From Okamejei kenojei (lineage: Eukaryota): a stretch of DNA of 64,000 nucleotides. Shown one piece after another: positions 5,224-63,021 of this stretch. Every line of letters begins with the position of its first letter. Within the stretch, counting starts at the first letter, position 1. Where the stretch lies: positions 3,906,001 through 3,970,000 of the forward strand of contig CM069166.1 of assembly GCA_035221665.1 (NCBI GenBank), read 5' to 3'. The notes beneath the pieces are model-generated. The model ran no database searches. It was not told the origin of the DNA and worked only from the letters and a program-made list of their open reading frames with translations. Made by a program: the position numbers and the translations under genes.

Positions 5224-8200
5224 TTTTTTTTATTTTTTTTTTTTTTTATTTTTGTTAGAAGTAAGTACAGTAGTCTGGTACTTAAGTACCTAATACATAA
5301 ATACATATTTTCATTCTTGTACAACTTCATACTTTTAGTTCAATAATAAAAGAACAGTGAGAGAAAAAAGAAATAAAGAGTGTCGGAATAGACAAGCGAG
5401 TAGAAACAGAAAACAAAAAAAAAAAATAAAGGACAGAGGTGAGAAGTTAAAAGATTGAAAGAGAAGGAAAAAGTAAAAAGAAAAGAGAGATTAGGAGAGA
5501 TCTACCTATCTTATATTTTTGCCCATCCGTCACCCAGTTCTAAACATTTAATTTCTAAGGTTATGTTATGTTGCACCATATGCTTGTATAAAGTTGATGA
5601 ACGGAGACCAAATCTTTAAGAATTGGTCTACTTTGCCTAGTAAGAGGAATCTCATTTCTTCAAGATGTAGCGTTTCAGACATGTTTGAGATCCACATTTT
5701 GAATGTTGGCGTAGGTGCGTTTTTCCAAAATTTAAGTATAAGTTTTTTTCGCTGTTGTTAGACCATAATTAAGAAAAGCTTCTTGGAATATAGTTAGTTT
5801 ACTTCCCTCTTCCGTTGATCCAAAGATAATCAATTCAGTATTGGGGTTCAATTTTGTGTTAAATAGTTTTGTAAAAATTCCAAAAATTTCATTCCAAAAT
5901 GTATACAGTTTTGTACAAGAGACAAAGGAATCTGCTATAGTGGCATTTTGAGTTAGACATTTGTCGCAGATGGGGAAACATTTGAAAATATTTTATTCAG
6001 TCTTGTTTTCGAATAATATGATCTATGTAAAATTTTAAATTGAATTAGGTTATGTCTTACATTCATTGAACATTTGTTTACATATAATAAATTTTTATCC
6101 CAACTATCGTTCGGAATTTTTATCAATAACTCTTGTTCCCAGTCTCTTCTAATTGCTTCTGTCGTTGGTGTTTCTATATTTAGAATTATAATATATAAGT
6201 AAGATATTAAATTGCTTGATTCTGCCTTTCTATTCATTCCTTCCTCCAGTAGATCTGGGGTTAAAGTTTGATATCCTTGTATATACTTTTTCAAATAATC
6301 TTGAATTTGAAGGTATTTGTAATATTGATTACTTTTCAAATTATATTTTAGTTGTAATTGTTGGAATGATAAAAGTTTTCCCATTTCATACATATCACCC
6401 ATCATTTTAATTCCTATTCTTTCCCAATGGGTAAACGTTTTATCAATAATGGATGGTTTGAATGAGGGATTATTAGCTATTGGAGAAAGAAGCGATAATT
6501 TTCTTAATTTTAAAGTTAATTTTATTTGTTTCCAAATTCGTATTATACTATGAATAATTGGATTCTTCTTGTATATTACATTGTTCAGTTTTATCGGAGA
6601 AAGTAGGATTGCTCCTATATTATAAGGGGAACAATCCTCTTTCTCCATTCTTATCCAATCTACCTGTTGGGCAGAACTGTCCAACCAGTAGATTATATTT
6701 TTAATATTCACTGCCCAATAATAATACAATAAGTTAGGGAGTGTCAGCCCCCTGATTCTTTAGATTTACACAAGTGGTTTTTTTTTTAAATTCTGTGTGA
6801 TTTATAATCCCATATGAAGTTTATAATATCTGAATCTAATTTTTTGAAGAATTTTTTAGGTATGTATATTGGTATTGATTGAAATAGGTACAATATTTGT
6901 GGTAAGAAGATCATTTTTATCGCGTTTATTCTGCCTATTAATGACATCGGCAGTGTCTTCCAAAATTTAATCAGCCCATTTAATTTAGTTAATAAAGGCG
7001 TATAGTTTGCGTTGAGTAATGATTTATAGTTCTCAGTAATTTGGATGCCCAAATATTTAAATTTTTCTGTTGTAATTGTAAAAGGGAATTTCAACAGATG
7101 TGTCGACTCTTGAGGTTTTATCGTCATAATTTCGCTTTTGTTCCAATTTATTCTATATCCTGAAAAAGAACCAAATTCTTCTATTAAATTTAGTATATTT
7201 GGTATGCTAGTTTGCGAATTTGTAACATATAATAATATACCGTCTGCATATAATGAAATTTTATTATTCGAGTGTTTGGTAATATACCCATGAATGTTCG
7301 GATGGCTTCTTATACTTTCAGCTAAAGGCTCTATCACTAGTGCAAAAAGCAGGGGCTATAACGCGCACCCCTGCCTATTGCCCCTTGCTAAATAGAATTT
7401 CGGGGATAATATATTATTAGTCAATATTCTAGCCGTCGGCTTATCATATAGTAGTTTTACCCATGAAACAAAGTTATCTCCCATATTAAATTTTTCCAAT
7501 ACTTTGAATAAATATTGCCATTCTACTTGATCAAAAGCTTTTTCTGCATCCAATGAAATAATTGCTAGTTCTTCTTCAGTATTATGTGAGTACATTATAT
7601 TAGACAACCGTCTCAAATTGTTAAATGAGTATCTCTTTGGTATGAACCCTGTTTGGTCCGGATTTATTAGTTTACTAACATATTTACTCAATCTTCTCGC
7701 TAGGGTCTTCGTTAATATTTTTTGGTCTGTATTTAGGAGTGCAATAGCTCTATATGAGCCTGGGTCTTCTAGATCTTATCCTTTTTTGGTATAAGTGTAA
7801 TAGTTGATTCAGTTAGTGTTTCTGGTAGTTTATTTTCTTTAAAAATGTATATATATAAATCTTGCAACCGTGGAGAAATTATTTCGTAGAATCTTTTATA
7901 GAATTCTTTACTAAAGCCATCTGGTCCTGGGGTTTTGCCATTCTTCAACAAACTAATTGTTTCTTCTATTTCCTGTAGTGTAATCTGAGCTCCTAATGCC
8001 TCTTGTTCCACCATATTTAATTTTGGAAGATTACAGTTATCTAAGAAATTTGCAATTTGAGTATTATTTGCAGAAGTTTTCGATGTATATAAATTTTGAT
8101 AAAATTGAGCAAATCTTTTATTAATATATTTAGGTAGTGTTAGTAATTCCCCTTTGTCTGATTTAATTTTAGTAATTGTATTTTCTGTGTCCCTTTTTTT

Positions 8201-8680
8201 CAGTTGGCGTGCTAGGAGTTTATGAGGTTTATCACCAAATTCAAAAGTTTCTTGTTTTGTAATTTGAAATAATCTCATTATTCTGGTCGATAAAATTGTA
8301 TTTAATTTATATTTTAGTATTATTATCTTATTATGTTTATCTATAGTTGGTTCTTTGGCATTTTCTAAATCAAATTGTCTAATTTCTTGTTCTAACTGCA
8401 ATTGTTCAGTATTATTCTTTTTATTTTGGAAAGCTTGGTATGAGATTATAGTTCCTCTAATAAATGCCTTAAAAGTTTCCCGTAATAAGGAGGGTGAAAT
8501 ATCTGGTGTATCATTTGTCTCAAAGAAGAATCTCATCTGCTCATTTAAATATGTGCAACCTTGTGAGTTATTTAAAATTTGGGGGTTAAACCTCCAAAAC
8601 AAATTTTTATCGGGCATTACTTCTAATTTTAAAGAAAAAGTTAACGGTGAATGATCAGAAATGATACTATTATGATATTT
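5224..8680 (-). mobile_element. L1/Tx1-clade LINE, 5'-truncated and frameshifted ORF2, inserted in DIRS copy 1
   Basis: ORFs 7769..8617, 7356..7691, 6786..7337 and 5953..6729 give the APE end (ISDHSP), KTPGPDG, DQTGF, SLDAEKAFD, GNRQGC and LYAD. The poly-A tail is seen as the T-run at 5224-5253. Confidence 0.92.
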
Positions 8681-9391
8681 TAAACTTTTAAACTCCGTTT
8701 TTTCACCCAGAGTATTTTCTTTTCTTTTTAACTTTTAAACTCTGTTTTTTCACCCGGAGTATTAACTTTTCTTTTTAGCTTTTAAATTCCGTTTTCCCTT
8801 TTTAACTCCTGGTGGCTCTATACACCAGCCACAGAGTTTGGATATGCCCTGTAAGTAATTCAACTGTACTTACCTGCGGGCCCGTACCTACCGCTGAGAG
8901 GAGCTGCGCTCTGCAACTCTTGCTCTGCCGTCAGCGTGGACATAATGCCGATCATGTGCCAGGCGGGGCTTCTTCACGTAGCCACTCACGTGACTCCGAA
9001 GTAAAATAGATAACTGATTTTACAAACTTGTTGTGTTGCTGCAAGTAAGAATGTAATTGTCCTGTTTCAATACATGTGGCAATTAAACACTCTTGACTAT
9101 CCAGACAAATTAGACATAAATGAACATTTTAATGAAAGAAGGTATTAGTGCAAACTACATTTAGAAACAAATACAAGCCCATGGCAGGTTATGGTGAACA
9201 AAAAAGGTTTTTCTTAAAATAGTTGCTAAATACTTCTTCCAGCTCATAACACAGACAAACGCAGACATTACTTCAGACCAAATGCAAAGCTAAAGCACTC
9301 AGTCAAAAATGTGAAACTGACACTTATTGGTGTAATATCCCAATTCTTTCTCAGAGAATAAAAAAGACCCACGAGTTTTGGAAATGGAACG

Positions 9392-14121: not shown

Positions 14122-14188
14122 ATGGATGCGGGACTCACGCCGTGGGCTGGATACGTTTACATGTTGGCCTCGTTGTTCACTGTGGCAG
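14122..14188 (+). CDS. Gene A exon 1, signal peptide (MDAGLTPWAGYVYMLASLFTVA)
   Basis: ATG at 14122, 22 codons with a hydrophobic second half plus 1 nt, donor CAG|GTACCT. Same length (67 nt) as gene B exon 1, with shared LT....Y......LF residues. Confidence 0.75.
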
Positions 14189-17100
14189 GTACCTGTGGCG
14201 AGCCTGCGCTGTTTTTCAGGTTGCGATCTGACCGCGGCGTTGCTGGTCACACGGCGCTGAGGAGGGGGCTCAGATGCTGGGGGTTTGGGTGGCTGGAGCT
14301 GCTTCTTGGTGGGAGAAAGCTTGTCCATGGCGTCGCCGACCCCCACCCCCCTCTCCCCCTCCTCACCCCAGTTCCCCATCACCTCTGGCAAACCCTGAAC
14401 TGCCCACTGATTTATCTTCGCTTCTGACAGGGAGCGGACCGCAGTTGGAGTTTAGAAACATGGACAATGGGTGCAGGAGGAGGCCATTCGGCCCTTCGAG
14501 CCAGCACCGCCATTCATTGTGTTCATAGCTGATCATCCACAATCAGTAACCCGTGCCTGCCTTCTCCCCATATCCCCTCATTCCACTAACCCCTAGAGCT
14601 CTATCTAACTCTCTCTTAAATTCATCCACTGATTCTCTTTTCAATTCATCCAGTGAATTGGCCTCTGTTCACAGGGAGTTGTGGATTCCACAAATTCACA
14701 ACTCCCTGGGTGGAAAAGTTTAGTTTACAGACACACAAAGTGCTGGAGTAACTCAGCGGGTTAGGCAGCATCTGTGGAGAACATGGATTAGGTGACTTTT
14801 CTGCTCAAGACCCTTCTTCATATTGAATGGCGGTGCTGGCCCGAAGGGCCGAATGGCCTATTACTGCGCCTGTTTTCTATGTTTCAGACTGAGGGTTTAG
14901 TTTAGTTTAGCGTCGAGGTGCAGTGAAAAGCTGCCACGTCCTGATTCACATTCAGGTACAGTGAAAGGTGAAATAGTTACAGGGACGGGGCGGCGGTTCT
15001 GCTGTCAAACGCAATGTGCGGGAGGATCTCGGCGGCTCAGGCTGCGTCTGTGGACGGGAATGGTCGGGACCCTTCAGACTGACGGAGAAGGATGATGGGG
15101 GGGAGCTGGGAAAACGACCCGATGCTTCATCAGGAAGGTCCCGACCCGAAGCATCGTCTGTCCGTTCCCTCCACAGACGCTGCCTGAGCCGCTGAGTTCC
15201 TCCAGCTCTGAGTTCAGCGCAAGGAGAAGCTTCAGCGCCTTCAGCGGGCGCTGGCGCAGCGAATGTAGCGCCAGAGACCCGGGCTCCATCCCGGCCACGG
15301 GTGCTGTCTGTACGGAGTTTGTACGCTCTCATAGCTACATAGAAAATAGGTGCAGGAGGAGGCCATTCGGCCCTTCGAGCCAGCACCGCCATTCATTGCG
15401 ATCATGGCTGATCGTCCCCAATCAATAACCCGTGCCTGCCTTCTCCCCATATCCCTTGTCTCCACTAGCCCCTAGAGCTCTATCCAACTCTCTCTTAAAT
15501 CCATCCGGTGATTTGGCCTCCACTGCCCTCTGCGGCAAAGAATTCCACAAATTCACAACTCTCTGGGCGAAACCGTTTTTTCTCCCCTCAGTCTTTAATG
15601 CCCCTCCCCCCCCCCCCTTTATTCTAAGACTGTGGCCCCTGATTCTGGACTCACCCAACATTGGGAACATTTTTCCTGCATCTAGCTTGTACAGTCCTTT
15701 TATAATGTTATATGTTTCTATAAGATCCCCACTCATCCTTCTAAACTCCAGTGAATACAAGCCCAGTCTTTTCAATCTTTCCTCATGTGACAGTCCCTCC
15801 ATCCCAGGGATCAATCTGGTGAACCTACGCTGCACTGCCTCAATCACAAGGATGTCCTTCCTCAAATTAGGAGAGCAAAACTGTACACAATGCTCCAGAT
15901 GTGGTCTCACCAGCGCCCTACACAACTGCAGAAGAACCTTTTTACTCCTGTACTGAAATCCTTCTTGTTATGAAGGCCAACATGCCACTAGCTTTCTTCA
16001 CTGTCTGCTGTACCTGCACGCCAACTTTCAGTGACCGGTGTAAAAGGACACCCCGTGATCAGTGGGGGTTTTCTCCGAGATCTTCGGTTTCCCCCCACAC
16101 TCCAAAGACGTACAGGTTTGTAGGTTAATTGGCTTGATTAATTTGCTTGATAAATGTAAAATTGTCCAGAGCTGAGTGCTGCTCTATAGCGTACTACCTC
16201 CAGATCCAGATAGACACAAAACCCTGGAGTAACTCAGCGGGACAGGCAGCATCTCTGGAGAGAGGGAATGGGTGACGTTTTGGGTCGAGACCCTTCTTCA
16301 GTACAACTTCTCACCAGAGATGCTGCCTGTCGCGCTGTGTTACTCCAGCTTTTTGTGTCCATCTTCGGTTTAAACCAGCATCAGCAGTTCCTTCCTACAC
16401 ATCCTTCAGCAACAGACTGGTTCCAGCAAGATGCAAGCACAGAACGCCACAGGAGATCCTTTTTCCTTGTGGCTATCAAACTGCACAACCCAGGGAGAAC
16501 GTGCAAACACCGTACAGACAGCACCTGTAGTCAGGATCGTACCCGGGTCTCTGGCGCTGTAAGGCAGCAACTCTACCGCTGCGCCTGGATTTCCATTATC
16601 TATTATCTGTACTACATATAACGTGATTTGTTCTCTTGTCCAAAATTGTAGCTGCAGATACAATATTGATCAAAGCAGAACCGTCAGCTGTGGAATTTGG
16701 ACGTCCTTTGATGGTGAACTGCAGTTCATCTTGTGCAGCAGCAAGGATACTAATGGAAGGAACGAGAGGACATAATGAAATAAAACAACCTCAGTGGTTG
16801 GCACATTCTTACTCAACAGTTAAGTCGTGGTCTCATCGAGTGTCATGTAGTATGGAATGCTCATCTGGGAAAAAGGATCGCTTGATGACAATAGTTCCTG
16901 TCTACAGTAAGTACAAGAATTTCTCTTCACACAAAGGTGGAATAGGAACAGCTGAGCAATGTGCCAATGTCTCTCACGGTTTCCAGCAATGGGAGGCTGG
17001 AGAACCCAAGGCCACATCCTCAGAATAAAAGGACGAATCTTCAGAATGGAGATGAGGAGGATTTTTTTCAGCCGGGGGTGATGCAATGGTGGGATTCACT

Positions 17101-44262: not shown

Positions 44263-45271
44263 CTAATGTGGGAGAAAACCGGAGATCCCGGAGAAAACCC
44301 ACACAGGTTCCGGGGAGAACATGCAATCTCCGTACAGACAGCAGCACCCCTAGTTAGGATCGTACCTGGGTCTCTGGCGCTGTAAGGTAGCAACTCTACC
44401 ACTGTGTCACCACCAGTGGTGGAGAGAGATATGATAGTGGTGTTCATGAGGCCTTTAGATAGGCACGGAGGTACAGGAAATAGAGGGATATGGATCATGT
44501 GCAGGCAGATGGGATCAGTTTAACTTGGCATCACAGACATTGTAGGCTCAAAGGCCCCGTCCTATACTGTACTGTTCTACAAACTTCGTTTTGGTTACAA
44601 CTAGATGATCTTTGTTTAAGATGTTGATTGAAGGATAAACATTAGTCAGGACACAGTTAATAACTTCTCATCTTCATCGTTCTATGGAATCTTTAACATC
44701 CGCGTAGGAGAGCAGACAAGAGCTCAGCTTAACGTGCAGTGTGAGAGATGGGCTTCTTTTTAATGTTTCCTCCTGATACTCCTTCAGTGTTGCACCAGAG
44801 GAACAGTGTGGGTGTCTCTCTGCTCAAACCCCTGGCTTGGGACTTGAACTCAGACCATTTTGACTATCGGATCCACTGACGGCCTCTACAGCCTTCTGTG
44901 GCAAACCATTGGTTCACAGCTGATGGACATCATTGTTCCAGATGCTGGCTGGGAATAGGGATGGGGAGATTGTATAAAGTGTGTGCCAGGGTCCAGGATA
45001 ATGGCTTTAGAACAGAACAATACAGCACAGAAACAGACCCTTCAGCCCATAATGTCTGTCCCGGACATAATGCCGACAAGCTCTTATCTGCCTGCACATA
45101 TCACATATCCCTCCATTCCCTGCATATCCATGTGCCAATCCACAAATCTCTTAAATGCCATTATCATATCTGCTTCAAACATAAAGTCATAAGGTCACAA
45201 GGAATAGGAGTAGAATTAGGCCATTCGGCCCATCAAGTCTGCACCATTCAATCATGGTAGATCTAACCCCA

Positions 45272-48200
45272 TTTCATTTCGGAGTCGCATGAGTGATTCC
45301 GTGAAGAAGCCGCCAGCACACATGCGCGTCAATACGTCGACGCATGGCGCAACGCTGGCTGCCAGGCGCGCTGCTCCTGCCATCGGTAAGTTTAAACCCG
45401 AAGGCAAGTTTTTAAACTTTTCAGGTTAGGTTTCCATTGCAGGAATCTCTTCTTACAGAGTTTCCTGCTGGATTTCGGGGCAAAGTCGGGACGGGCCGCG
45501 GGGAGACCTTTATGGACTGCGTCCCAGTCACGGACTGTGGGGAATCCCGGCCACGGACCGCAGGGAACCCGCTACGGAGACGGCTGAAGTGCGGGTAGCG
45601 GCGGGGGTCAAATTCGCCTTCAGAGTCGCTGGCGGTGGAGCCAGCGGCTTCAGACTGGTGCGGCAGCACCTTGGCAAACCCGCTTGAAGGGCAGCCACGG
45701 AGAAAGTCCGTACGGCCCATTGACTCAAACGAGTCGGGCCAGGAGGATTCCTGGTGCAGAGGATCCCCTACTTCTATGGGTAACGTTCTTCGGACGTCAA
45801 ACCCACATGGAGCACCTAATGGAGAGGTGCTCCACAATGGTATGCTCCAAGAAAGGAGTTATATCACTGCGGGTCTCTGCGGGGCCCCCGGCAACAGCAC
45901 CTGTGTACAGGGCTGCACACTGTCTCCCACTCTGAAGATGGGAGCAGTCGGAAACACTCGTAAAAGTTGGAAACACTTGTAAAAACTTGTAAACAACCTT
46001 GTTGTTATGAAGCAGCCTCTATTCATCAAGAGTATTGGCAATATAGTGGCTGTGTTTTCAGCTGTGCATTTGGACCTTTGCATTTTCAGTGCCATGCAGG
46101 TCGTTATTAACAGATCTACCTATTCCTATTACCAGCTGAAGCTATCAAAGTCACAATGGTGTATTCTACATTGCTCCTGTACTTTTGCTCAGTAACTCTT
46201 CAGTTATATTACAAACTGATACTAGTACTCAAAGATGAAAAATTACGAATACCATCTCTAGTTACGGAGGCAAATGGGCTTTGCATGCTCAGCTCCAAGT
46301 TGATACACTACGGTAGGGGCATTTGACGCTGGTGTATCATCACGTAAAGGTCTATGACAACACAGTATGGATGTTGTATCACAACGTATTTAATGACATT
46401 GTGGTTGAATGGAACACCGAATATCAATATGTTTGCATCCAGGCTCAATCTCCATTGCAAATATATGTGGCACAGTGGTAATAGATGTATTCTCGCTACA
46501 CTGAGGAGGAATGTTCTTTCTGTCTTTCCTCCATTTTGCCTCATCAGTCGGGTCTTGCACAAAAACCAGCAAGATCTCTCCTCAGGAATTTTGTACGGAC
46601 TGACTGGCCTATGCAGCCATGGCTCCTGCTAAATGTTGGGGATGATTATAGGACCTTATATGGTTGTCCTAAACACAAACATTTGGTGGTTTACCCCGTG
46701 ACTGAGGAAACCATCCTCTGCATGATAAAATCAATTTATAGACTTGGAGTCTCTGAAAAGACCATTCTGCGGCACGGATTGCCAGACCGATCCATGTACG
46801 TGCTCACTGCAGAATGTAGGGATAGCACTGAGAAAGCAGCACATTTTTCCTCATCAGGAGATGGGAAGTGTTTTGGTTTTAAATGCCAATGGTCCATATA
46901 ATACGGCATGGATAACTAACGATCGGAGTTCATTTCAGATGAGTCTTTTAATTAAATTATAGTACCCTTAACTGTGCCAACGTGCTTTCTCATCATAGTT
47001 GCTGCAGCGATCAGGACCCACTCTGTCGGGTCACACTCTCTAATAACGGAATTTGGATCAATCTCAGGATACAGTATCAATTGGAATAAAAGTGAACTTA
47101 TGCCAATAACGATGAATAATTTACATATATTACAACAATTTCCTTTCAAGATAACAAATGAAAATATCAAATATCTTGGCATTTTCGTTACAAAAAGATT
47201 TGATTCTTTATTTAAATTTAATTTCCCTTTATTACTGAATAAATTAAATAAGAATATTTTATACTGGAAAAGTTTACCTATTTCAATGTTAGGTAAAATC
47301 AATGCGATAAAAATGATTTTTCTCCCACAATTATTATATTTATTTCAATTAATCCCGATATACCTCCCTAAATTTTTTTTTTAAAAAGTAGATTCCCTAA
47401 TTACTAACTTTATCTGGGATTATAAGAACCACAGAATAAATAAAAAACACTTATGTAAAGCTAAAATAAATGGGGGATTAGCATTACCAAATCTTATGTT
47501 TTATTACTGGGCAGTTAATATTAAAAATATGAATTTTTGGCTAGAAGAAATAGATAACAAACCAAACTGGTTAAAAATGGAAAAAGAAGATTGTTCTCCA
47601 TTTGAAATTAGTTCTATAATATTCGCTAACACTAACATAGCTAAGAAAATTTATAGTGAAAATCCGATAATAGAAAACGGAATCCGCATTTGGAAACAAA
47701 TAAAGAAAACATTAAAATTAAAATCTATACCATTAGGTCTTACCATTGCCAATAATTTTACGTTTAAACCCTCAACGATGGATAAGGCTTTTTTACAATG
47801 GAAAAATAAAGGAATCTTTAACATGGGTGATCTTTATAAGGAAAACTCTTTTCTTTCATTTCAAGAGTTACAACAAACTTATGGACTACACAATAATGAA
47901 TATTTTAGATACTTACAAATCAGAAACTATGTTTCTGCAAATACACAAGAACTTAGAAATAGAAAGACTGAAATTTTAGATGAATGCTTGAATAAACATC
48001 CAAATACAGAAAAAATGATATCATATATTTATAATATTTTATTGGAAAGTGATATCCCATCAACAGAAACACATAGACAGCTTTGGGAAAATGAATTAGG
48101 TCAAATAATAAGACCAGAAATATGGGACGAAAGCTTACAGCACATACATCATTGCTCGTTAAATGCTAAACATCCCTTATACAGTTTAAAATTCTACATA

Positions 48201-50320
48201 GACTACATTATTCCAAATCTAAATTACATAATATATTTCCAAAATTATCTCCTATATGTGATAAATGTCAAATCTCAGAAGCAAATTTGTCACATTCATT
48301 TACTAATTGTATAAAAATTGTAGAATATTGGAACGAAATATTTAAGATAATTTCGAATGTTATTAATATTACTATGACTTCTGATCCAAAGTTAATAATA
48401 CTTGGAATACTTGAAACGGACCAACTAATTACAATGAACCAAAGAATTTTTATCGACTATTGTTTAATAATTGGGAAAAAATTAATACTAAAATTTTGGA
48501 AAGGCCCTGCATCCCCAACAATTAAAATGTGGAATACAGAAATGTCGGAGACACTTCACTTGGAGAGATTGAGGCTTGTCCTTATGGATAGGTTAGATCT
48601 CTTCAGAGGGATTTGGTCTCCATATATTAAATATTTACAGGGTCATAATGGTTCGGCGCGAGGACTTGACTGAGGCCTGAATATCGGAATGGATGAAGAA
48701 ATATATATAATAAATCATGAATATATCTCCAAGGACGGATTAATGAGTAATATTCCAATCTCCATCAAACTTTCCATACTCTCTTTTCTATTTTCCTATG
48801 CTTAATTAGAAAAAAATATAGAAACACATTATATTAAATTATTAATATTAGTACGAATATAGATATCACTGGTGGTATGAAAATATTATTAATGTCTTGT
48901 ACTTTCAATTATATAAAATTGTGTATTTTCAACTATATAATAATTTTGGAATTTAAAGTCAATAATAATACAAACATTCTTAATATTATGAAAATATAAT
49001 GAATATCATAGAAGTTCGGTTAATATTGTGTATTATCAATTATAACATGGGGAGCTGTATTTGGAAATCATAGAAAATATGGATATCATGGGTAGTATGA
49101 GTATATTGCTAATACTAGGAATGTACTATTAATACCACATACTCCCAATTATATAAAATAAACAACCTTAATATGTATAATTAATAATATTACAAATAAT
49201 ATAAACAGTATCAATTTATCATTATTATCATGTATTTTTTATCATCGTATAAGAGTGTACTTTGTAATTACTTTGTTTCTATAATTTAAAAAAATTAAAA
49301 AATAAAAAAAAACACTCTCTGATATCCAGATTTATAAGGATATCTTTAACATAATTCTCCCAGGCCCAGGTACTCGGAGATATGGGATGTTAGCATTGTT
49401 CTTCAACTGCTTCACCAGTAGGGCCCAGCTACATCTCTATCCCTGGTCAAACTCACTTACAAAGTGTTTATGCTCATGGCACTAGTCTCAGCGCAACTGG
49501 TCCAGCCACTACTTATATTGCGACTGGACTGGATGGTTACATTATGTTTATGATCTAGTTAAGCAGCAGACCAGGGGTGTCAGGTCCCAAACTATTTCTC
49601 ATGGCATACCCCATGGACCTTTGGTTGTCTGTAGTCACTCATTTACAACAATATGTCAAGGTCACCAAGAGCCTTAGAGGATCTGCACTAGCAATGGTTG
49701 TTAGTTACTAAAAACCTCATAAAAGGTATCTATCCAGACCATCTCTAGGTGGTCAAACAGGGTTTTGGCTTATGCAGAAGTATATACTATATTTCTATCG
49801 CACTCTACTAGGGCTGCTACTACATTAGCAGCAAGGGTAATGTATGTTCCACTGGACCACACCCTAGCGGCTGCAGGATGGTCAAACAAATGAACTTTCC
49901 AACATTTTATAATAACCGATTGCCAGACCAGGGGTATTTGCCAATTTCCATTTATGATTTGTTTCATAGTTTCCCCCAGGATGGAAGGGGTCACTATTAT
50001 TCTCCTTTGATGATTAAAGCATCAGCATTTTTAACAAACTATGTCATGGCTGACTGCATTAATCTTTTTCACTCATCCATGGTCAATTGATGCAGTGTGT
50101 GACTCCTGGACTCGTCTCTGGCATGAAATCACAGAGCTTTGAAGTCTTCACGGAATCACTCTGAAATTAAATAGTAAGATTAAGTGAGAATTACCAGTTT
50201 GAAGTTTGATATTTATTTTATGAGGAGTTACAATGAGCGATTACGTGCCCACCACTCCCAACCCTCATATCATAAAGGCCATCTGGTAGTTCTCAGTTTC
50301 TCTCCAATCTTACTATATTC
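45272..50320 (+). mobile_element. Decayed DIRS retrotransposon, copy 2 (gag-like region, RT/RH remnants, MTase-like domain, tyrosine recombinase, ICR)
   Basis: GTPNINMFASRLN and FPPFCLISRVL (MTase-like, ORF 46354). YR motifs VGSHSL|ISRF..PRYSEIWDVSIVL, HSTRAA and LAAAGWS..TFQHFYN at 49800-49915. ICR at 50141-50260 is complementary to both termini. Confidence 0.85.
47042..49311 (+). mobile_element. L1/Tx1-clade LINE, 5'-truncated, inserted in the YR gene of DIRS copy 2
   Basis: ORFs 46974..47384, 47496..48314 and 48287..48673 are homologous to the 5224-8680 element. AT-rich 3' UTR and poly-A. TSD ACACTCTCT at 47033-47041 and 49312-49320. Confidence 0.92.
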
Positions 50321-51477
50321 AGGTCAAATCTCTAAACTAAACTAGATTAGATAAAACAGGAAATATATCAACTGACCCTCCAGTACTCACTGACATTTAG
50401 GATGACGAAATTTGATATTTCCGTTCCTATTTATGTGGAAATGTTACGGGCACTTTGCCACTAATTAAATGAGATGATGAGGAGTGATTTGATGCTCTTG
50501 ACAAATAGCCAGTCATGTCCTCTAACACATATATTGCATGGCAGAGTAATTTGGAAGATGGGAAATGTAATTCCAGATTAAATTTTATAAATTTGTATAA
50601 GTATTGACACAGAGTGTTGTCTGTCACACTTCGTATCATGTACACATGAACAAAATCATTTTCATTTGTTAGAAAAGCCTTACTGCATACTTTAATAGCA
50701 ATGAAAAATCTGTAAAAATGCTGCAAAAATTTACATTGCAATGTTTTTTAAAAATTAATTCTATGTTGGTTTTTAAAAAAATGTGTTATTTCTTCTTTTT
50801 CGTGTTTAAATTCAGTACAGACAGCATCCACAGTCAGGATCGAACCCGGGTCTCTGGCGCTGTGAGGCAGCAACTCTACCGCTGTTCACTGTGCCACCCT
50901 AGTGGATGGGTTCGTGTTGAGAGCAAAATGGATTAGTTTTGGTGTCGTGACACACTGTGTGTAGATGGGGGCTTGATGATCCATGCTGTATTGATTCTAT
51001 GACTCCAAAAGTATAAACAGCCTACGGTGTGAATGCAGTGGGCTGCTAGATGTAGTGTACTGGGATGTGGTCCATGACCCATCATTGTAAAAATGGTGAA
51101 TAACACATTGAACAAATTCCAGGATTCACCAGTAACTTCAGAACATGCGTTGTGTGGGGCACGGTGGCGCTGTGCTAGAGTTGCTGACCTACAGTGCCAG
51201 AGACCCAGGTTCAATCCAGACCACGGGTGGTGTCTGTATGGAGTTTGTACGTTCTCACCGTGACTGCGTGGGTTTTCTCCGAGTATTTCAGTTTCCTTCC
51301 ACAGTCCAAAGATGCACCGGTTTGTAGATTAATTGGCTTGGTATAGATGTAAAAATTGTGCACAATACATCATTGTGCTATTATATCACAAACCAGCAAA
51401 ACATATTTATATAAAAATTATATAATTCCAGGAAATGGCGTCAGCGTTAGAGTCTGAGGTGATTCTTAATTCACACT

Positions 51478-52762
51478 GGACCCACTGCAGTTCGCTTACC
51501 GCCACAACAGATCAACGGTGGATGCGATCTCGCTGGCCCTCCACTCCGCTCTGGACCACTTGGACAACAAAAACTCATATGTCAGGCTGTTATACATCGA
51601 TTACAGCTTGGCATTTAACACAATCACCCCCTCCAAGCTGGTTACCAAACGCGCAGAACTGGGTCTCTGCGCATCCCTCTGCAATTGGATCCTCGACTTC
51701 CTCATTCACAGACCACAGTCTATTCGTATTGGTGGAAATGTGTCAGCCTCGATAACAATCAGCACGGGAGCACCTCAAGGCTGCGTGCTCAGCCCCCTGC
51801 TGTACTCACTCTATACTCATGACTGCGTAGCCAGTCACAGTGCGAACTCCATCATCAAGATCGCTGACGACACCACTGTTGTGGGACGTTTCACTGATGG
51901 GGATGAGTCAGAGTACAGAAGAGAGATCGAGCGACTGTCCATATGGTGCCAGCACAATAACCTGGCCCTCAACACCAGCAAAACCAAGGAACTGATTGTG
52001 GACTTTGGAAGGAGTAGGATGGGGACCCACAGTCCTGTTTGTATCAACGGGTCGATGGTTGAAAGGGTCACAGCTTCAAATTCCTGGGCGTTCACATCTC
52101 TGAAGATATTTCCTGGTCCGAGAACACTAATGCAATTATCAAGAAAGCACATCAGCGCCTCTACTTCCTGAGAAGATTACGGAGAGTCGGTTTGTCAAGG
52201 AGGACTCTCTCTAACTTCTACAGGTGCACAGTAGAGAACATGCTGACCGGTTGCATCGTGGCTTGGTTCGGCAACTTGAGCGCCCTGGAGAGGAAAAGAC
52301 TACAAAAAGTAGTAAACACTGCCCAGTCCATCATCGGCTCTGACCTTCCTTCCATCGAGGGGATTTATCACAGTCGCTGCCTCAAAAAGGCTGGCAATAT
52401 CATCAAGGACCCACACCATCCTGGCCACACACTCATCTCCCCGCTACCTTCAGGTAGAAGGTACAGGAGCTTGAAGACTGCAACGACCAGGTTCAGGAAT
52501 AGCTACTTCCCCACAGCCATCAGGCTATTAAACCTGGCTCGGACAAAACTCTGATCATTAATAAACCATTATCTGTTATTTGCACTTTATCAGTTTATTA
52601 TTCATGTGTGTATATATTTATACAATGGTATATGGACACGCTGATCTGTTTTGTAGTCAATGCCTACTATGTTCTGTTGTGCTGAAGCAAAGCAAGAATC
52701 TCATTGTCCGGTCAGGGACACGTGACAATAAACCCACTTGTACTTGAACACTTGAACTTGAA
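51478..52762 (+). mobile_element. Rex1/Babar-clade LINE, 5'-truncated RT with frameshift
   Basis: [23 protein letters not shown]...[11 protein letters not shown]...[20 protein letters not shown]...ADDTTVVG, with a 3' AATAAA and (CTTGAA)n tail. Confidence 0.88.
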
Positions 52763-54830: not shown

Positions 54831-55189
54831 TATGATGGGGAACAGCGGGTGGGGGGAGGGGAGTAGGTTGTTACTGTGACGGGAGACTGGGTAGGGAGGG
54901 GGTTACAGTGATGGGAATGTGGGAGGTTTACTATGATGAGAGGCAGGAGTAGAGGGGTGGGGGGGGGGGGGGTACTGTGAAGGAAGGAACTGCAGATGCT
55001 GATTTACTGTGATGGGAATGTAGGCGAGGGAGAGAGGTGGGGAGTAACACCATTGCGCTTATTATCAGAGCTCAGATCCAGTGTGAATCTTCCACTGGTG
55101 TTAAGGTCAGTCTGCAGCAAATATCCTGTACATTCCTCTCGCCAGTGGTCATCGCTCTGCACATATGGGCGTGTTTACCTCACGATTGT

Positions 55190-55600
55190 CACCGGACTTT
55201 CCCCAAGTCCGTCTCTGTGATGCTTGTTCGCAGCGGCGAGCCGAGGGGAGGTTTTTTTTTTGAACTGTGGGACTTTCTCAGCATTTAGTTTCGGAATTGT
55301 TTCCGGGAAATCAGAGCGACTGTTTGCATTAATAGCGAGTGTGTGGGCTGCGGGAGCGGGAGCTGCGCTCATTTGGACGGGCGGGGACCGGAGAGGCAGC
55401 GGGCGCCGAGGGTCGCGGTCATGGTCTCCGCACTCACTGCAAGCGGGAGATACCTTCACCTCGTCTTGTTCCTATTCGCGTTCACAAGTTAGTACAATCC
55501 TCACATCAAACGCGTTTCTCCCATGGCGTGTACCGTTTTTTATTTCCAGGCCGAGCTATTAAGCGGAGCTCGATAACCAGCGGGGGGATTTCCTGTCATT
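55190..55600 (+). promoter_or_regulatory. Gene B promoter and first-intron module: GAS/STAT palindrome, NF-kB sites, GC box
   Basis: TTTCCGGGAAA at 55300-55310. kB-like GGACTTTCCCC at 55194-55204 and GGGACTTTCT at 55269-55278. GC box GGGCGGGG at 55379-55386. Perfect kB site GGGGATTTCC at 55584-55593 in intron 1. Local CpG enrichment. Confidence 0.75.
55421..55487 (+). CDS. Gene B exon 1, signal peptide (MVSALTASGRYLHLVLFLFAFT)
   Basis: Kozak-like gtcATGG, 22 codons plus 1 nt, donor CAA|GTTAGT, in a CpG-rich promoter context. Confidence 0.8.
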
Positions 55601-58600
55601 TATTAATGTCCAAACGAAAAGCAGACGATTGCTTGTTTTTGGCGGAGTGAAGCAGCGGCGCGGTGGGACAGGGCGCTGCCTGGACGCCGACAACACGCCA
55701 TTACCGGCACCGGTGCAGCGAGTGTGTGCGCGTATGTGTGTGAGCGAGTGAGTGTGAGCGTGTGTGTGCGTGAGAATGTGGGAGCGAGTGTGCATGTGCG
55801 TGCGTGAGCGTGTGGAGTGTGTGTGTGTGTCTATGGGGGTGAGTGTGAATGCGTATGAGTGTGTGTGAGTGGATGTGTGTGTGTGTGAGCGAGTGTGTGC
55901 GTCTGCGTGTTCGTTTGTATAAGTGTGTGGATGTGTGAAAGAGAGTGAGTGTGAATGTTCGTGTGAAAGTAATTGTGTGAGTGTGAGAGTAATTGTGTGA
56001 GTGTGTGTGTGAGTGTGAGAGTAATTGTGTGTGTGAGAGTAATTGTGTGTGTGTGTGTGTTAGAGTAATTGTGTGTGTGTGAGTGTGTGTGGATGTGTGT
56101 GTGAGTGAGTGTGAGAGTAATTGTGTGTGTGTGAGTGTGAGAGTAATTGTGTGAGTGTGTGTGTGAGTGCGAGAGTAATTGTGTGTGTGTGAGTGTGAGA
56201 GTAATTGTGTGTGTGTGTGTGTGAGTGTGAGAGTAATGTGTGTGAGTGTGTGTGTGAGTGTGAGAGTAATTGTTTGAGTGTGTGTGTGAGTGTGAGAGTA
56301 ATTGTGTGTGTGAGTGTGAGAGTAATTGTATGTGTGAGTGTGAGAGTAATTGTGTGTGTGTGAGTGTGAGAGTAATTGTGTGTGNNNNNNNNNNNNNNNN
56401 NNNNNNNNNNNNNNNNNNNNNNNNNNNNNNNNNNNNNNNNNNNNNNNNNNNNNNNNNNNNNNNNNNNNNNNNNNNNNNNNNNNNNNNNNNNNNNNNNNNN
56501 NNNNNNNNNNNNNACCTGTGGACCGGGGCTGTGTGGCTCCAACCTGCAGCCTCTGGGCCGCCGGGCAGTGAGCGTCGCGGACGGGGGGAGGTCTCGTCTC
56601 CTGTCTCGGCAGGGTTGGCCTGTTCCATGTGGGAGTTGTGACCCGCTGCTCCGGTGGGTCAGAAACATCACCGGCTTTCACCTGGAAGGGTTTGAACATG
56701 TTTTTCAGAGGATTTAAATGTGATTCTCTTGTGATTTAAATGTTTGCCTGGAATGCATTTTGCCTGAAGGGTCCCGCCTGTCCGTTCCTTCCACACACAC
56801 TGCCTGAGCCGCTGAATTAACAATGGCCTGTTTCCTTTATCATTGTTACTTTTTTTGCATATCTTTCATTCATTTGTTCTATATCTCTCCTTTCCCTTTC
56901 TCCTGACTCTGTCTGCAGAAGGGTCTCGACCCGAAACGTCACCTATTCCTTTTCTCAAGAGATGCTGCCTGACTTGCTGGGTAACTCCAGCATTTTGTGT
57001 CTATCTTTAAAAAAATAGCATGTACAATGGTGATATGGAGCCCAATCACTTGAACATTTCTCCATTGTCAATCTGTTTATTCTACTGTATATTCAGCACT
57101 TGCTAAACAGAAACATCCTTTACTTGAACACTGGGAAAAGTTAAGAATCACCTCAGTCTCTAACACCGACTCCCATTTCCTGGAGTTATATAATTCCTAG
57201 GAAAAAAAAAGTTTTACAATTCAATTCAATAAACTTTATTTATTCGTTAGGAACTTAATTTGTGCAGAACATCAGTGCGTGTACAGTTCACATACCCAGC
57301 AACACAACACAATACACCACACACATCACATACCAGCAGTCCAACAGTGGTCAGTAGGTAAAACTTGCAAAGCACAATACACGAAGAATAGGCAATAAAA
57401 ACATTAAAATAATGTTAAAAATGTATATATAGACAAATGAATAAATAAATAGATCAACTATTCATGAATCTAATGGATGTAGGCACAAAACTCGACGTGG
57501 CTCTCTAAGTCTGAATGTGAGTGACCTGTATCTCTGGCCTGAGGGTAGAAGACTGTTTTGACTGTGCAGTGAGTGAGTGGTGTCTGAGGCTATTTTTGTT
57601 CCTTTTAGCTTTGTCCTTCTATTGGAAATACTGATCGGTGGTTCCTGCTCCAGTCCGATTATTTTACTGCTCATTGATATGAATTTGTTTAGTGGGTTGC
57701 GATGGATGTTGGATAGTGACCCAAACCAGGCTGACATATTGAAGGTTATTACTGATTCAATGAAACGTTTGTAAAAAGCTGTCAGGACTGACTGGTGAAC
57801 CTGAAGTCTGCGGAGTTTCCTCAGGAAAAAGAGGCGCTGCTGACACTTAGAAAAGATAGTTTCACTGTTTAGTTGGAAGGTGAGTTTATGATCAATTATT
57901 GTCCCAAGGTGCCTGTATGACTCGACCCTTTCTATTGGCTGGTTGTTGACTAACATAGAAAATAGGTGCAGGAGTAGGCCATTCGGCCCTTTGAGCCTGC
58001 ACCGCCATTCAATATGATCATGGCTGATCATCCAACTCAGTATCCTGTACCTGCCTTCTCTCCATACCCCCTGATCCCTTTAGCCACAAGGGCCACCTCT
58101 AACTCCCTCTTAAATATAGCCAATGAACTGGCCTCATTTAACGTATGTTACTGGTTCGTGAGTAATTTGAAATGACTTTTAGATCAAGAAATTACCTTGA
58201 TTTTGCCCTTTGTTTAAATGGATTTTGTATCTCTGTACTTATTGTCATGTTTTGTTTTTCTCTGACAGCTAAAGGGAATGGATTTGAGGTTGAAATAAAC
58301 ATAGACACTCCAGCTGTGAAAATCGGGGGCTCTTTGAATGTGACCTGCAGAACCACATGTTTAAATCCTACTATAGATATGGAACTAAAATCAGGGCTAA
58401 ATATACACTGCCTTCAAGTTAACAACTCAAACACATGCCAATTCCCAATTGGGGAGAAGTGGGATTTACCAGTGGTTTGCATTGTAACATGCAAATCTGA
58501 AAACAATACTCAGAAGGATGTCAAAAAAGAGATCACTGTGTACAGTAAGTGTAATTTCTTATTCTAACCGGTATAGGAGAGTTGGGCCAAAGGGCCTGTT

Positions 58601-61600
58601 TCCACTCTGTATCACTCTATAACATTTGATAGCAGAATAATACGCAGAACCGGACAGCACATTGGCGCAGCAGAAGAGTCGCTGCCTTACAGCGCCAGAG
58701 ACATGGATTCGATCCTAACTACGGGTACTGTCCGTAAGGAGTTTGCACGTTCTCCCCATAACCTGCATGGGTTTTCTCCGGGTGCCCCGGTTTCCTCCCA
58801 CACTCCAGGTTTGTAGGTTAATTGGCTTTGGTAAAACTGTAAATTATCCCCAGTGTGTGTAGGATAGTGCCAGTGTGCAGGGATCACTGAAGAGCCTGTT
58901 TCCCTAAACTAAACTAAACAAAAAGCCTTGAAAACTTGTGATCATAGTGTATAGTAAGTGAAAACTCCCATTCTAAAATGATAATTAATTAGTTACACAG
59001 GTGACATTGCAGAATATCATGTATAGTCTTTCTGCTGACTAGTCAGCACACAACAAAAGGTTCTCTCTGTACTTTGCTACACGTGACAATAAACTAAACT
59101 CACACTCTGAATGTGTAGGAAGGAACTGCAGATGCTAGTTTAAACCGAAGATAGACACAAAATGCTGGAGTAACTCAGCAGAACAGGCAGCATCTCCGCA
59201 GAGAAGGAATGGGTGATGTTTCAGGTTGAGTCCCTTCTTCAGACTGATGTCAGGGGAGAGAGAGGTACATAGATAAGGAAGTGAAAGGTGAAAACAGGAC
59301 AAAGGGAATGCAGACCAAGGAAAATGTAGAATAAATAATGTAGAATGTAATGTAGAATATATGGGTTAATTGGCCTCTGTAAATTGCAATTATTGTGTAG
59401 GGAGTGGATGAGAAAGTGGGATGACATAGAACTAGTATGAACGGGTAATTGATGGTCGGTGTGGTGTCAGTAAGCTGAAGGGCGTGTTTCCATGCTGCAT
59501 CTCTGAATTAAACTAAATATGAAATACTAGAAACACTCAGCAGTCCAACCAGCATCTGTGGGGAGAGAACATCTAAGTTCTTGCTTACAATTTAGTTTTG
59601 TTTAATTTAGTTTAGAATTACAGTGCGGAAACAGGCCCTTCGGCCTACCAAGTACGCAAGGACCAGCGATCCCTGCACACTAACACTAATCTATACACAC
59701 TCGGGAAAATTTACACTAATACCAAGCCAATTAACCTACAAACCTGTACCGCTTTGGAATGTGGGAGGAAACCAAAGATATCGGAGAAAACCAATGTGGT
59801 CATGGGGAGAACTTACAAACTCCGTACAGACAGCACCCGTAGTCTACATCAAACCAGGGTATCAGGCAGCAACTCTACCACTGCGCCACTGTGCCACCCT
59901 AAATATTGAAGAATATATGTACATTCCTGCTGTGTGTATATCACTTGAACAATCAGTGAATATGAGATGAGGTGGGACAAATACTAGTCAGGTTCATTAT
60001 TTCAGTGAATTTTATTAACATGATTCTCCTTCAACAGATCAAGATCTCGTCATTGCACCACATCCAGAAGTGATGGAAATTAACAAAACATATCAGCTGC
60101 ATTGTACCGGTCCAAGAGTGTATCCAAACACCAAGCTCCATCTCAAGTGGCTCAGAGGGAACAAAGTTGTTAAGTCAGTTAAATCAACGGATTCAAGAAA
60201 GCTTCCAGATGATGTGACTCCGTTGGTCAATATCCTCGATCTCATTGCAAGCAAGACTGATGATGGACAAGTGTACACATGCTTGGCAGAGCTGGACTTG
60301 GACACAAACACCACGAAAGTAATCAAATCCTCCTCCGTGACTCTGCAAACCTACTGTGAGTTCCACTTGAACAATAATTGCTCTCCTCTGCTCAAGACTA
60401 AGCTGAAATAAACTGGTAGTCACATTTTGTAAAGTTTAGTTTAGAGATACAGCGTGGAAACAGGCCATTTGGCCCACCGAGTCCGTGCCAACCAGCGATC
60501 CCCCCACACCAACATTATCCTACACACTATGGACAATTTATAATTGTGAGTCGCCAATTAGCTATAAAATGTGCATGTCTTTGAAGTGTGGGAGGAAGCC
60601 AGAGCACCTGCATAAAACCCACAGGTCACGGGGAGAATGTACAAACTCAGTACAGATAGCACCGTTAGTCAGGATTGATGCCTGGTCTCTTGTGCTGTAA
60701 GGCAGTAACTCTACCCCTGCGCCACCGTGCTGTCTGCTGATACATTTACAAGCAAGCCACAGACACTAAACCAGAAGGGATGATTTATCCTCAGAACAAG
60801 CACTTTAAGTCCAGTTCACCCTGTCTGCAACTGCAAATCTGCAGAACACGTTAACACAATGTGTGTTTCTGCTTGGTTTAGTTTAGTTTAGTTTAGGGAT
60901 ACAGCGTGGAGACAGGCCCTTCAGCCCACCGTGTCCGCGCTGACCAGCGATCCCCGCACACTAACACTATCCTACTCACTGGGGTAGATTTACAAATTTT
61001 ACCAAGCCAATTAACTTACAACCCTGCACATCTTTGGAGTGTGGCAGGAAAACGGAGCTCCTGGAGAAAACTCACGTAGATCATGGGGAGAACGTACAAA
61101 CTATGTACAAACCGCACGCATAGTCAGGATCGAACCCGGGTCTCAGGTGCTGTAAGGCAGCAACTCTACCGCTGCGCCAATCAACCTCCCCCCCCCTCCT
61201 CATTACAACTTCTAGAGTGCTCCGGGGATTACTTTTTAGAACAGTTACTGAACCTATCTGGGAGCAGTAGAAACAAGGAACTGCAGATGCTGGTTTATAC
61301 AAAGTGCCAGAGTATCTCAGCGGGCCAGGTAGCATCTCTGGAGATCATGGAAGGGGTCGTGAAAGATCACCTAAACGTGTTCTCCAGAAAGGCTGCCTGA
61401 CCCGTTGAGTTACTCCAGAACTTTGTGTCGTGCTATGTCAGTGAGTGGCTGGAGCTCAAAGCAGAGTTAGATCCTCGGGATGCCAGAAGCATAGGAGGAG
61501 TCTATTTAAATAACAAATTTGTGTGGCACGGTGGCGCAGCGGTAGAGCAACTGCCTTGCAGCGCCCGAGACACGAGTTAGATCCTGACTAATGGTGCTGA

Positions 61601-62250
61601 CTGTATGGAGTTTGCACGTTCTCCCCGTGACCTGCGTGGATTTCATCAGGGATCTCCGGTTTCCTCCCACACTCCAAAGCCGTACAGGTTTATCGGTTAA
61701 TTGGCTCGGTATAATTGTAATTGTCCCTAGTGTGTATAGGATAGTGTTAGTCCGCTGGTTGGTGCGGACCCGGTAGGCCAAAGGGCCTGTTTCTGCGTTG
61801 TATCTCTGAACTAAACTAAATTACGGGACATCCAGATTCTGACTTGGGTGTGGTGAACTCCTGTTTGTGCGTTCAATGCAATGCCAGTATTGGTCTGCCT
61901 TCCATTAGTTCCATTGTCCACAGAAACCTAATATGCAGTGAATTCCTTGTGTGTCATTACAGTTTTACCAGAGCCTAGAATCCTCAACAGAAAGCCCATT
62001 GTAGTGAATGAGGAGGTGACGTTGGAATGTGAGGTCCATAATGTCTATCCAGCTGAGAACTTGACTGTAACATGGTTTCACAATGGTGAAGAACTGAAGT
62101 CAGTTACAAAGACGTCAGCGTCCCACGATATCTGGGCAACAACATGGACACCACAAGACACGGGATTGACTGAACTTGCCTGCAGAGCAGATTTTGAGGA
62201 TTATCCATTAAATCTAACAAGGAGTGACAACATTTCCATTGAGGTGTACG
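55421..62250 (+). CDS. Gene B (partial, continues beyond window): ICAM-1-like Ig-superfamily adhesion molecule, paralog of gene A
   Basis: join(55421..55487,58269..58544,60038..60355,61963..62250,...). All introns are GT-AG phase 1 and the frame is open. D2 is clearly homologous to gene A D2. No TM exon was found inside the window. Confidence 0.88.
55720..56384. repeat. TG-rich compound micro/minisatellite (GTGTGAGAGTAATT units) in gene B intron 1
   Basis: Seen directly. It runs into the assembly gap. Confidence 0.95.
56385..56513. other. Assembly gap (129 N)
   Basis: Run of N. Confidence 1.
57220..57950 (-). mobile_element. Rex/L2-like LINE 3' fragment
   Basis: ORF 57462..58031 IERVESYRHLGTIID.KLTF.......KCQQRLFFLRKLR...LLPSG.RYR, with a (TTGAA)n tail. 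Confidence 0.75.
58269..58544 (+). CDS. Gene B exon 2, ICAM-type Ig D1
   Basis: Acceptor ttttctctgacag|, donor |gtaagt, 276 nt. GGSLNVTCRTTC...IDMELK...VVCIVTC...ITVY. Confidence 0.92.
59590..59900 (-). mobile_element. V-SINE/HE1-like SINE
   Basis: Same consensus. Further copies lie at about 20568-20940, 22690-22920, 38925-39240, 41360-41580, 51157-51350, 58659-58920, 60433-60735, 60878-61180 and 63820-64000. Confidence 0.75.
60038..60355 (+). CDS. Gene B exon 3, Ig D2
   Basis: Acceptor ttctccttcaacag|, donor |gtgagt, 318 nt. YQLHCTGPRVYP...KWLRG...DDGQVYTCLAE...SVTLQTY. Confidence 0.92.
61524..61820 (+). mobile_element. V-SINE/HE1-like SINE, near full length
   Basis: tRNA-like head, central conserved domain and (TAAAC)n tail. 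Confidence 0.8.
61963..62250 (+). CDS. Gene B exon 4, Ig D3 (no counterpart in gene A)
   Basis: Acceptor cattacag|, donor |gtaagc, 288 nt. VTLECEVHNVYPAENLTVTWFHNGEE...LACRADF...IEVY. Confidence 0.9.
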
Positions 62251-63021
62251 GTAAGCATGCTGGATAACCGGAGATTATGATTGATATCATAGAGTCATAG
62301 TCATACAGCGTGGAAACAAGCCCTTCGACCCAACTTGCCCCCACCGGCTACACTAGTCCCACCTGCTTGCATTTGGCCCATATCCCTCTAAACCTGTCCT
62401 ATCCATGTAACTGTGTAACTAGTTTCTTAAACGTTGGGATAGTCCCTGCCTCAGCTACCTCCTCAGGAAGCTGTTAAAGATCCCTATCTACCTGTGGGCA
62501 CTCATTGCATGGGGACATTTTGTACAGGAGAGTCACAAAACTTTAATCGGTCCGCACAGAAACCACAGTAATTAAGGGGAAAAAAGGCAACATGATGTCA
62601 CCTAGATGGTGTTATTCACCCACATTCTTACTAATGGAAGATAGACACAAAATGCTGGAGTAACTCAGCAGGACAGGCCACATCTCTGGATAAAAGGAAT
62701 GGGTGGTGTTTAGGGTCGAGACCCTTCTTCATTCAAGAGCTGCCTCAATGGAGCATGTGACTGAGCCCTGCTCTTATTTCGTCTGTTTTTAATATACACC
62801 TCGTTACAGAGGCAGCTACCAGCAACTGAATTTATCCAAGATAAAAACTGAATGTAGATGCATAACATTTACATCAGGGAGAAATATTGTAGTACCTTCC
62901 CTACGCCCAGGAATTAAATCAGTGGACTATTTACCATTGTTTTGAAAGCAAAGAGTTCCCTGCAGTGACGTAGAAGCCTCTGGCTTGTTACCGGCCAGGA
63001 TGGAGATGCTAAACACTATAA

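Follow-up and report, generated by a model that had tools for sequence, protein, structure and literature searches.

The 64,000-nucleotide stretch of Okamejei kenojei DNA analysed here (hereafter the window) carries two tandem genes resembling those for intercellular adhesion molecules (ICAMs), gene A upstream and gene B downstream, and the region of interest, 55190-55600, surrounds the leader exon of gene B. Each gene has a leader exon and an exon matching the N-terminal ICAM domain, and two further immunoglobulin (Ig) exons of gene B fall inside the window. The coding features, with their positions in the window, are the following.

14122-14190: gene A, leader MDAGLTPWAGYVYMLASLFTVAG
16627-16920: gene A, ICAM_N exon (29.1 bits)
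55421-55487, plus strand: gene B, coding part of exon 1, a signal-peptide leader MVSALTASGRYLHLVLFLFAFT; phase 1, donor GTTAGT
58269-58544, plus strand: gene B, exon 2, ICAM N-terminal Ig domain (D1); phase 1 at both ends, Pfam ICAM_N
60038-60355, plus strand: gene B, exon 3, second Ig domain (D2); phase 1, nearest PDB entries ICAM-5 and ICAM-2 D2
61963-62250, plus strand: gene B, exon 4, third Ig domain; phase 1, Pfam ICAM1_3_5_D2

Long open frames resembling reverse transcriptase, of the kind carried by LINE-type retrotransposons, lie at 5956-8734 on the minus strand and at 46956-48670 and 51470-52551 on the plus strand, taking up a large part of the DNA that separates and surrounds the two ICAM-like genes.

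Gene B and its relatives

Exons 2 to 4 of gene B have clean AG/GT borders, are in phase 1 and encode one Ig domain each. Searched singly rather than as a joined protein, exon 2 scored 30.5 bits against Pfam ICAM_N (PF03921; cut-off 21) and exon 4 scored 31.5 bits against Pfam ICAM1_3_5_D2 (cut-off 27.5). The four cysteines of D1 are present in the arrangement C-x3-C ... C-x3-C (VTCRTTC and VCIVTC), and the Glu of 'MEL' in this domain aligns with the integrin-binding Glu that stands in 'LET' in ICAM-2 and in 'IET' in ICAM-1. Among solved structures (PDB), D1 matched ICAM-2 (E = 0.005), ICAM-1 (0.67) and ICAM-3 (0.86) and nothing else, and the nearest structure to D2 was ICAM-5, followed by ICAM-2. 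Three Ig exons lie inside the window, and the orthologous products have three or four Ig domains, compared with five in the ICAM1 type. A transmembrane segment and a short cytoplasmic tail are found in the skate orthologues P0128, P0133 and P0135; those of gene B itself lie past the end of the window. Judged by its sequence, gene B is an ICAM-family gene that is nearer to ICAM-2 and ICAM-5 than to ICAM-1. The proposal that it is the functional counterpart of ICAM-1, made from the DNA letters before any database search (the sequence-only reading), therefore stands as regards the family and falls short as regards the member, the nearest mammalian relative being ICAM-2 or ICAM-5, ahead of ICAM-1.

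A search of protein representatives returned an elasmobranch family whose nearest member is LOC129714544 of the little skate (Leucoraja erinacea), a different skate species in which the domain order is the same as in gene B; its isoform X3 (XP_055520215.1) is annotated as 'intercellular adhesion molecule 2-like'. The gene B leader, MVSALTASGRYLHLVLFLFAFT, matches the N-terminus of XP_055520215.1 at 17 of 22 residues, and identity to little skate proteins is 70% for exon 2 (D1, to P0128) and likewise 70% for exon 3 (D2, to P0006). When the orthologue P0128 was itself compared with solved structures, ICAM-2 ranked first (8e-12), ahead of ICAM-5 (4e-7), ICAM-1 (7e-6) and then VCAM-1. Further orthologues are annotated 'ICAM5-like' in Amblyraja radiata and 'ICAM1-like' in Rhinoraja longicauda, and the skate orthologues have the same leader. 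The best relatives beyond skates are 41-51% identical and carry the automatic names ICAM1-, ICAM5- or VCAM1-like, and with such identities and such inconsistent names a one-to-one orthology with ICAM1 is doubtful.

The domain encoded by exon 4 is present in the RNA-derived 504-aa relative P0133 and in Amblyraja P0134 but absent in the 406-aa isoform P0128, so that exon 4 is probably alternatively used. Isoforms X1 and X2 of LOC129714544 (P0006 and P0127) begin with threonine-/serine-rich mucin-like repeats and have a different D1 exon, a structure that points to tandem D1 exons or to merged neighbouring genes.

Motifs at the 5' end of gene B

The features of the 5' region and the adjoining part of intron 1 are listed below in order of position.

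54986-55001, plus strand: fragment of a dispersed repeat, 16-mer GGAACTGCAGATGCTG, 14 copies in the 64-kb window
55001-55420, plus strand: stretch before the ATG covered by the spliced RNA contig X1; a promoter or else a long 5'UTR
55100-55900, no strand assigned: CpG island enclosing the leader exon, with no other in the 64-kb window
55193-55203, plus strand: kB-like site 1, CGGACTTTCCC (CGGACTTTCC/GGACTTTCCC), a 9/10 match to GGGACTTTCC
55269-55278, plus strand: kB-like site 2, GGGACTTTCT, a 9/10 match to GGGACTTTCC
55300-55310, no strand assigned: GAS palindrome TTTCCGGGAAA with core TTCCGGGAA, a perfect match and predicted STAT dimer site
55379-55386, plus strand: GC box GGGCGGGG, Sp1-type, 35-42 nt before the ATG
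55584-55593, plus strand: intronic kB site GGGGATTTCC, a perfect match, 97 nt into intron 1
55722-56384, no strand assigned: intron 1 repeats, a GT-rich microsatellite and a 26-nt minisatellite, up to the assembly gap 56385-56513

The motifs described in the sequence-only reading were all recovered where it had placed them. The GAS palindrome lies 111-121 nt before the gene B ATG at 55421, two kB sites matching at 9 of 10 positions lie upstream of it and a GC box lies downstream, and the perfect kB site said to stand about 100 nt into intron 1 begins 97 nt past the donor at 55487/55488. The GAS, the kB-like sites, the GC box and the intronic kB site are all inside the CpG island, where the observed/expected CpG ratio (o/e), taken in 200-nt windows, is 0.88-1.5 from about 55100 to 55900 as against 0.2-0.6 just upstream; the kilobase 55001-56000 reaches 1.05, and every other kilobase of the window stays at or below 0.9. 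Neither a TATA box (TATAWAW) nor the C/EBP motif TTGCNNAA was found in 54900-55900, so that no such C/EBP motif lies near the kB sites, and no further copy of the gene B 5' region was found in the window.

A transposon end and repeats lie directly upstream of the gene B 5' region. The repeat GGAACTGCAGATGCTG is present at 54986-55001 and at 13 further positions, and copies of this kind interrupt RNA contigs and may be mistaken for transcript ends. Within intron 1, about 660 nt of GT-rich microsatellite and a minisatellite with a 26-nt period, in 16 copies, run into the assembly gap, and the length of this intron is accordingly uncertain.

The optimal GAS core TTCCSGGAA occurs once in the 64-kb window, at the palindrome itself, and seven matches to GGGACTTTCC are present if one mismatch is allowed, two of them being the pair that stands 76 nt apart upstream of gene B. 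The expectation from local composition was obtained from 2000 dinucleotide-preserving shuffles of 55150-55650, as the fraction of shuffles reaching the observed count. Because the motifs were picked after the sequence had been read, the resulting fractions overstate significance: 0.0015 for the GAS 11-mer TTTCCGGGAAA, 0.008 for TTCCSGGAA, 0.002 for the kB-like pair, 0.096 for the perfect kB site, which is not significant, and 0.36 for the GC box, which is uninformative in so G+C-rich a stretch. Thus the GAS palindrome and the kB-like pair exceed chance in local shuffles, and the GC box does not. Nine-of-ten matches to the loose consensus GGGRNNYYCC are frequent, at 2.7 per kb, so that the only unusual part of the kB matches is their likeness to the classical kB site.

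These figures bear on the possibility that the motifs came together by chance in a CpG-island promoter rich in G+C and contribute nothing to any cytokine response. The motifs were selected post hoc, among many windows and many possible factor sites, and the frequency of the loose kB consensus and the unremarkable fractions for the perfect kB site and the GC box are what such a cluster would give. The 11-mer and the classical-type kB pair are each rare in the shuffles, however, and the cluster is found at a gene of a class that is switched on by precisely these factors in mammals. We consider an origin by chance plausible but less likely than not.

RNA contigs spanning the leader exon

Parts of 58200-62300 are present in 11 public sequencing runs, four of which, from four studies, were compared with 55030-55690. 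The X1 contig (organism A, about 97.6% alike; 1059 nt) places its letters 30-485 on 55030-55487, with 29 further letters upstream, and past 55487 it continues CTAAAGGGAATGG..., identical to the start of exon 2 but for 1 difference in 30 letters. The X5 contig (organism B, about 91% alike) begins at 55418 and has the same junction between 55487 and exon 2. RNA contigs from two studies therefore join 55487 exactly to 58269, the first position of the ICAM_N exon, and the leader exon that had been assumed for gene B is real and spliced as assumed. The X1 material had been labelled 'probably DNA'. That origin was rejected for the contig, which skips the intron and runs on through the exons; a contig from which the intron is missing is spliced RNA. 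The X1 run as a whole also has a word share of 0.19, near the exonic share (roughly 0.21).

Colinearity of the X1 contig with the genome extends to about 55001, and the contig hence includes the GAS palindrome and both kB-like sites. This raises the possibility that transcription is driven by a promoter located before about 55000 and that a long first exon, with a 5'UTR of at least 420 nt, contains the three upstream motifs, whose role would then be confined to that of downstream elements, if they had any; such an arrangement cuts across the other readings of the locus. Besides the colinearity of the spliced contig with 55001-55487, the missing TATA box in 54900-55900 is in keeping with it. 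The 5' end of the contig falls on the dispersed repeat at 54986-55001 and is thus probably an assembly break rather than a transcription start, in which case the RNA may begin still further upstream. Assembled contigs, however, show neither transcription starts nor levels, and a few upstream reads suffice to lengthen one. Upstream ATGs are present at 55012, 55018, 55165 and 55220 and are then absent for 200 nt, from 55223 to 55420, and this pattern, together with the onset of the CpG island only at about 55100-55200, fits a main start downstream of 55220. The transposon end and repeats that directly precede the region are, moreover, not promoter-like. Weighing these points, we hold a long first exon of this kind to be unlikely, at well below even odds.

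Variation of the sites in close relatives and in gene A

In organism A (X1) all sites upstream of the ATG are intact, at a divergence of only 2.4%. In organism D, X9 record 5 (about 94% alike) has the GAS and kB site 1 unchanged, with 85 identical nucleotides around the latter, and has kB site 2 changed to GGGGCTTTTT (A55272G, C55277T); the intronic kB site reads GCGGATTTCC in X9 record 8. The intronic kB site is preserved in a short X6 contig from organism C, between flanking sequences that differ. In a copy about 90% alike, represented by X9 record 7 and X6 record 3 (organisms D and C), the palindrome reads TTTCCGGGATA or TTTCTGGGATA and its core is broken. Retention of the GAS and kB site 1 at 94-98% identity is uninformative on conservation at that distance. 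Substitutions in organism D amount to 4.0% in the upstream stretch versus 8.3% in intron 1 (Fisher p = 0.052), which is a weak sign of constraint.

For a chance origin of the cluster these comparisons cut both ways: changes at two kB sites in a close relative and loss of the palindrome from a related copy would be expected of motifs without a function, but organism D has an intact GAS and no substitution in the 85 nt around kB site 1. The tandem paralogue offers a further comparison. No GAS, kB-like site or CpG island was found in the 500 nt before the gene A ATG (14122), and the promoter regions of genes A and B have no significant similarity, their best local match being a shared dispersed repeat.

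Comparison with the human ICAM1 promoter

The palindromic IL-6/IFN-gamma response element of human ICAM1 reportedly reads TTTCCGGGAAA, and intron 1 of the human gene is said to contain an NF-kB site. In the human promoter an Sp1 site adjoins the GAS. Compared by published layout, gene B and human ICAM1 have the same order of site types, namely kB, GAS, GC box, ATG and intronic kB. The human NF-kB site occupies -187 to -178, next to a C/EBP site, and the IFN-gamma/IL-6 element bound by STAT1 and STAT3 lies within -116 to -36 (2023 review). The gene B palindrome thus stands at a similar distance from the start, and it is the same 11-mer as the reported human element. Gene B differs from the human gene in having neither a TATA box nor a C/EBP site, in the position of its GC box, 69 nt after the GAS as opposed to the adjacent Sp1 site in human ICAM1, and in its kB sites, which are of the classical GGGACTTTCC type, the human one being a variant. 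Its 5' region is, in addition, a CpG island whose sites may be transcribed, unlike the human layout. Of the claim that gene B reproduces the human ICAM1 architecture there remain, then, the GAS and the order of sites in outline; the TATA box, the C/EBP site and the adjacent Sp1 site are missing.

The sequence-only reading had gone on to suggest that this switch may date back to the ancestor of jawed vertebrates, which would make the kB/GAS/Sp1/intronic kB layout a single cis-regulatory module that human ICAM1 and gene B have each retained since then. The shared 11-mer, its similar distance from the start codon and the common order of site types are what such descent would leave. The palindrome, however, is a generic optimum for STAT binding. 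The commercial reporter pGAS-TA-Luc carries GTTTCCGGGAAAG and a 2xGAS STAT3 reporter carries TTCCGGGAAAT, the same GAS in engineered multimers, whereas gene B has a single natural copy in a CpG island; being the generic best STAT site, the 11-mer offers by its identity with the human element no proof of common descent. Common descent is further opposed by the tandem paralogue, gene A, which has no such sites and a promoter that does not align; by the broken palindrome in the copy about 90% alike and the varying kB sites in close relatives, which suggest fast turnover; by the greater closeness of the protein to ICAM-2 and ICAM-5 and the doubtful one-to-one orthology with ICAM1; and by the missing TATA box and C/EBP site and the distant GC box. 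Given the turnover in close relatives and paralogues, the doubtful one-to-one orthology and the generic nature of the site, we regard an ancestral module as very improbable. A literature search found no study on elasmobranch ICAM promoters, and a phylogenomic paper touches on the origins of ICAM1 in passing only.

Discussion

We propose that 55190-55600 controls the response of a skate ICAM-family gene to cytokines by means of generic STAT and NF-kB sites, a reading to which we assign a probability of roughly one in two. The region would comprise the CpG-island 5' control sequences and the leader exon of the gene. The GAS palindrome is predicted to bind STAT dimers after interferon or IL-6-type signals, and the kB-like and intronic kB sites may bind Rel/NF-kB after TNF, IL-1 or TLR signals; the two inputs together would raise the expression of an integrin ligand in inflammation. 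The sites would act either before the transcription start or from within a long first exon. On the sequence comparisons presented here, independent recruitment of generic STAT and NF-kB sites fits the data better than a shared ancestral module, and the identity with the human ICAM1 element would then mean that a gene family that evolves fast and duplicates locally had come independently to use the generic optimum for STAT binding.

To our knowledge, the ICAM-like genes of cartilaginous fishes have been annotated only automatically, and we know of no study of their regulation. If the sites described here work, they would offer a simple way into the question of how these animals increase their leukocyte adhesion molecules in inflammation. 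Promoter modules rarely survive for about 450 million years, and for this reason a module common to skates, sharks, chimaeras and tetrapods at aligned positions would matter more. Were an ancestral module real, cytokine-inducible expression of integrin ligands would be an ancient, hard-wired switch.

Another CpG-rich stretch, weaker than the first (o/e 0.76), lies at 45000-46000 in the window. It contains a palindromic perfect kB site, GGGGAATCCC, at 45539, a GAS-type site, TTCCGTGAA, at 45297, and GAAAGTCC at 45702.
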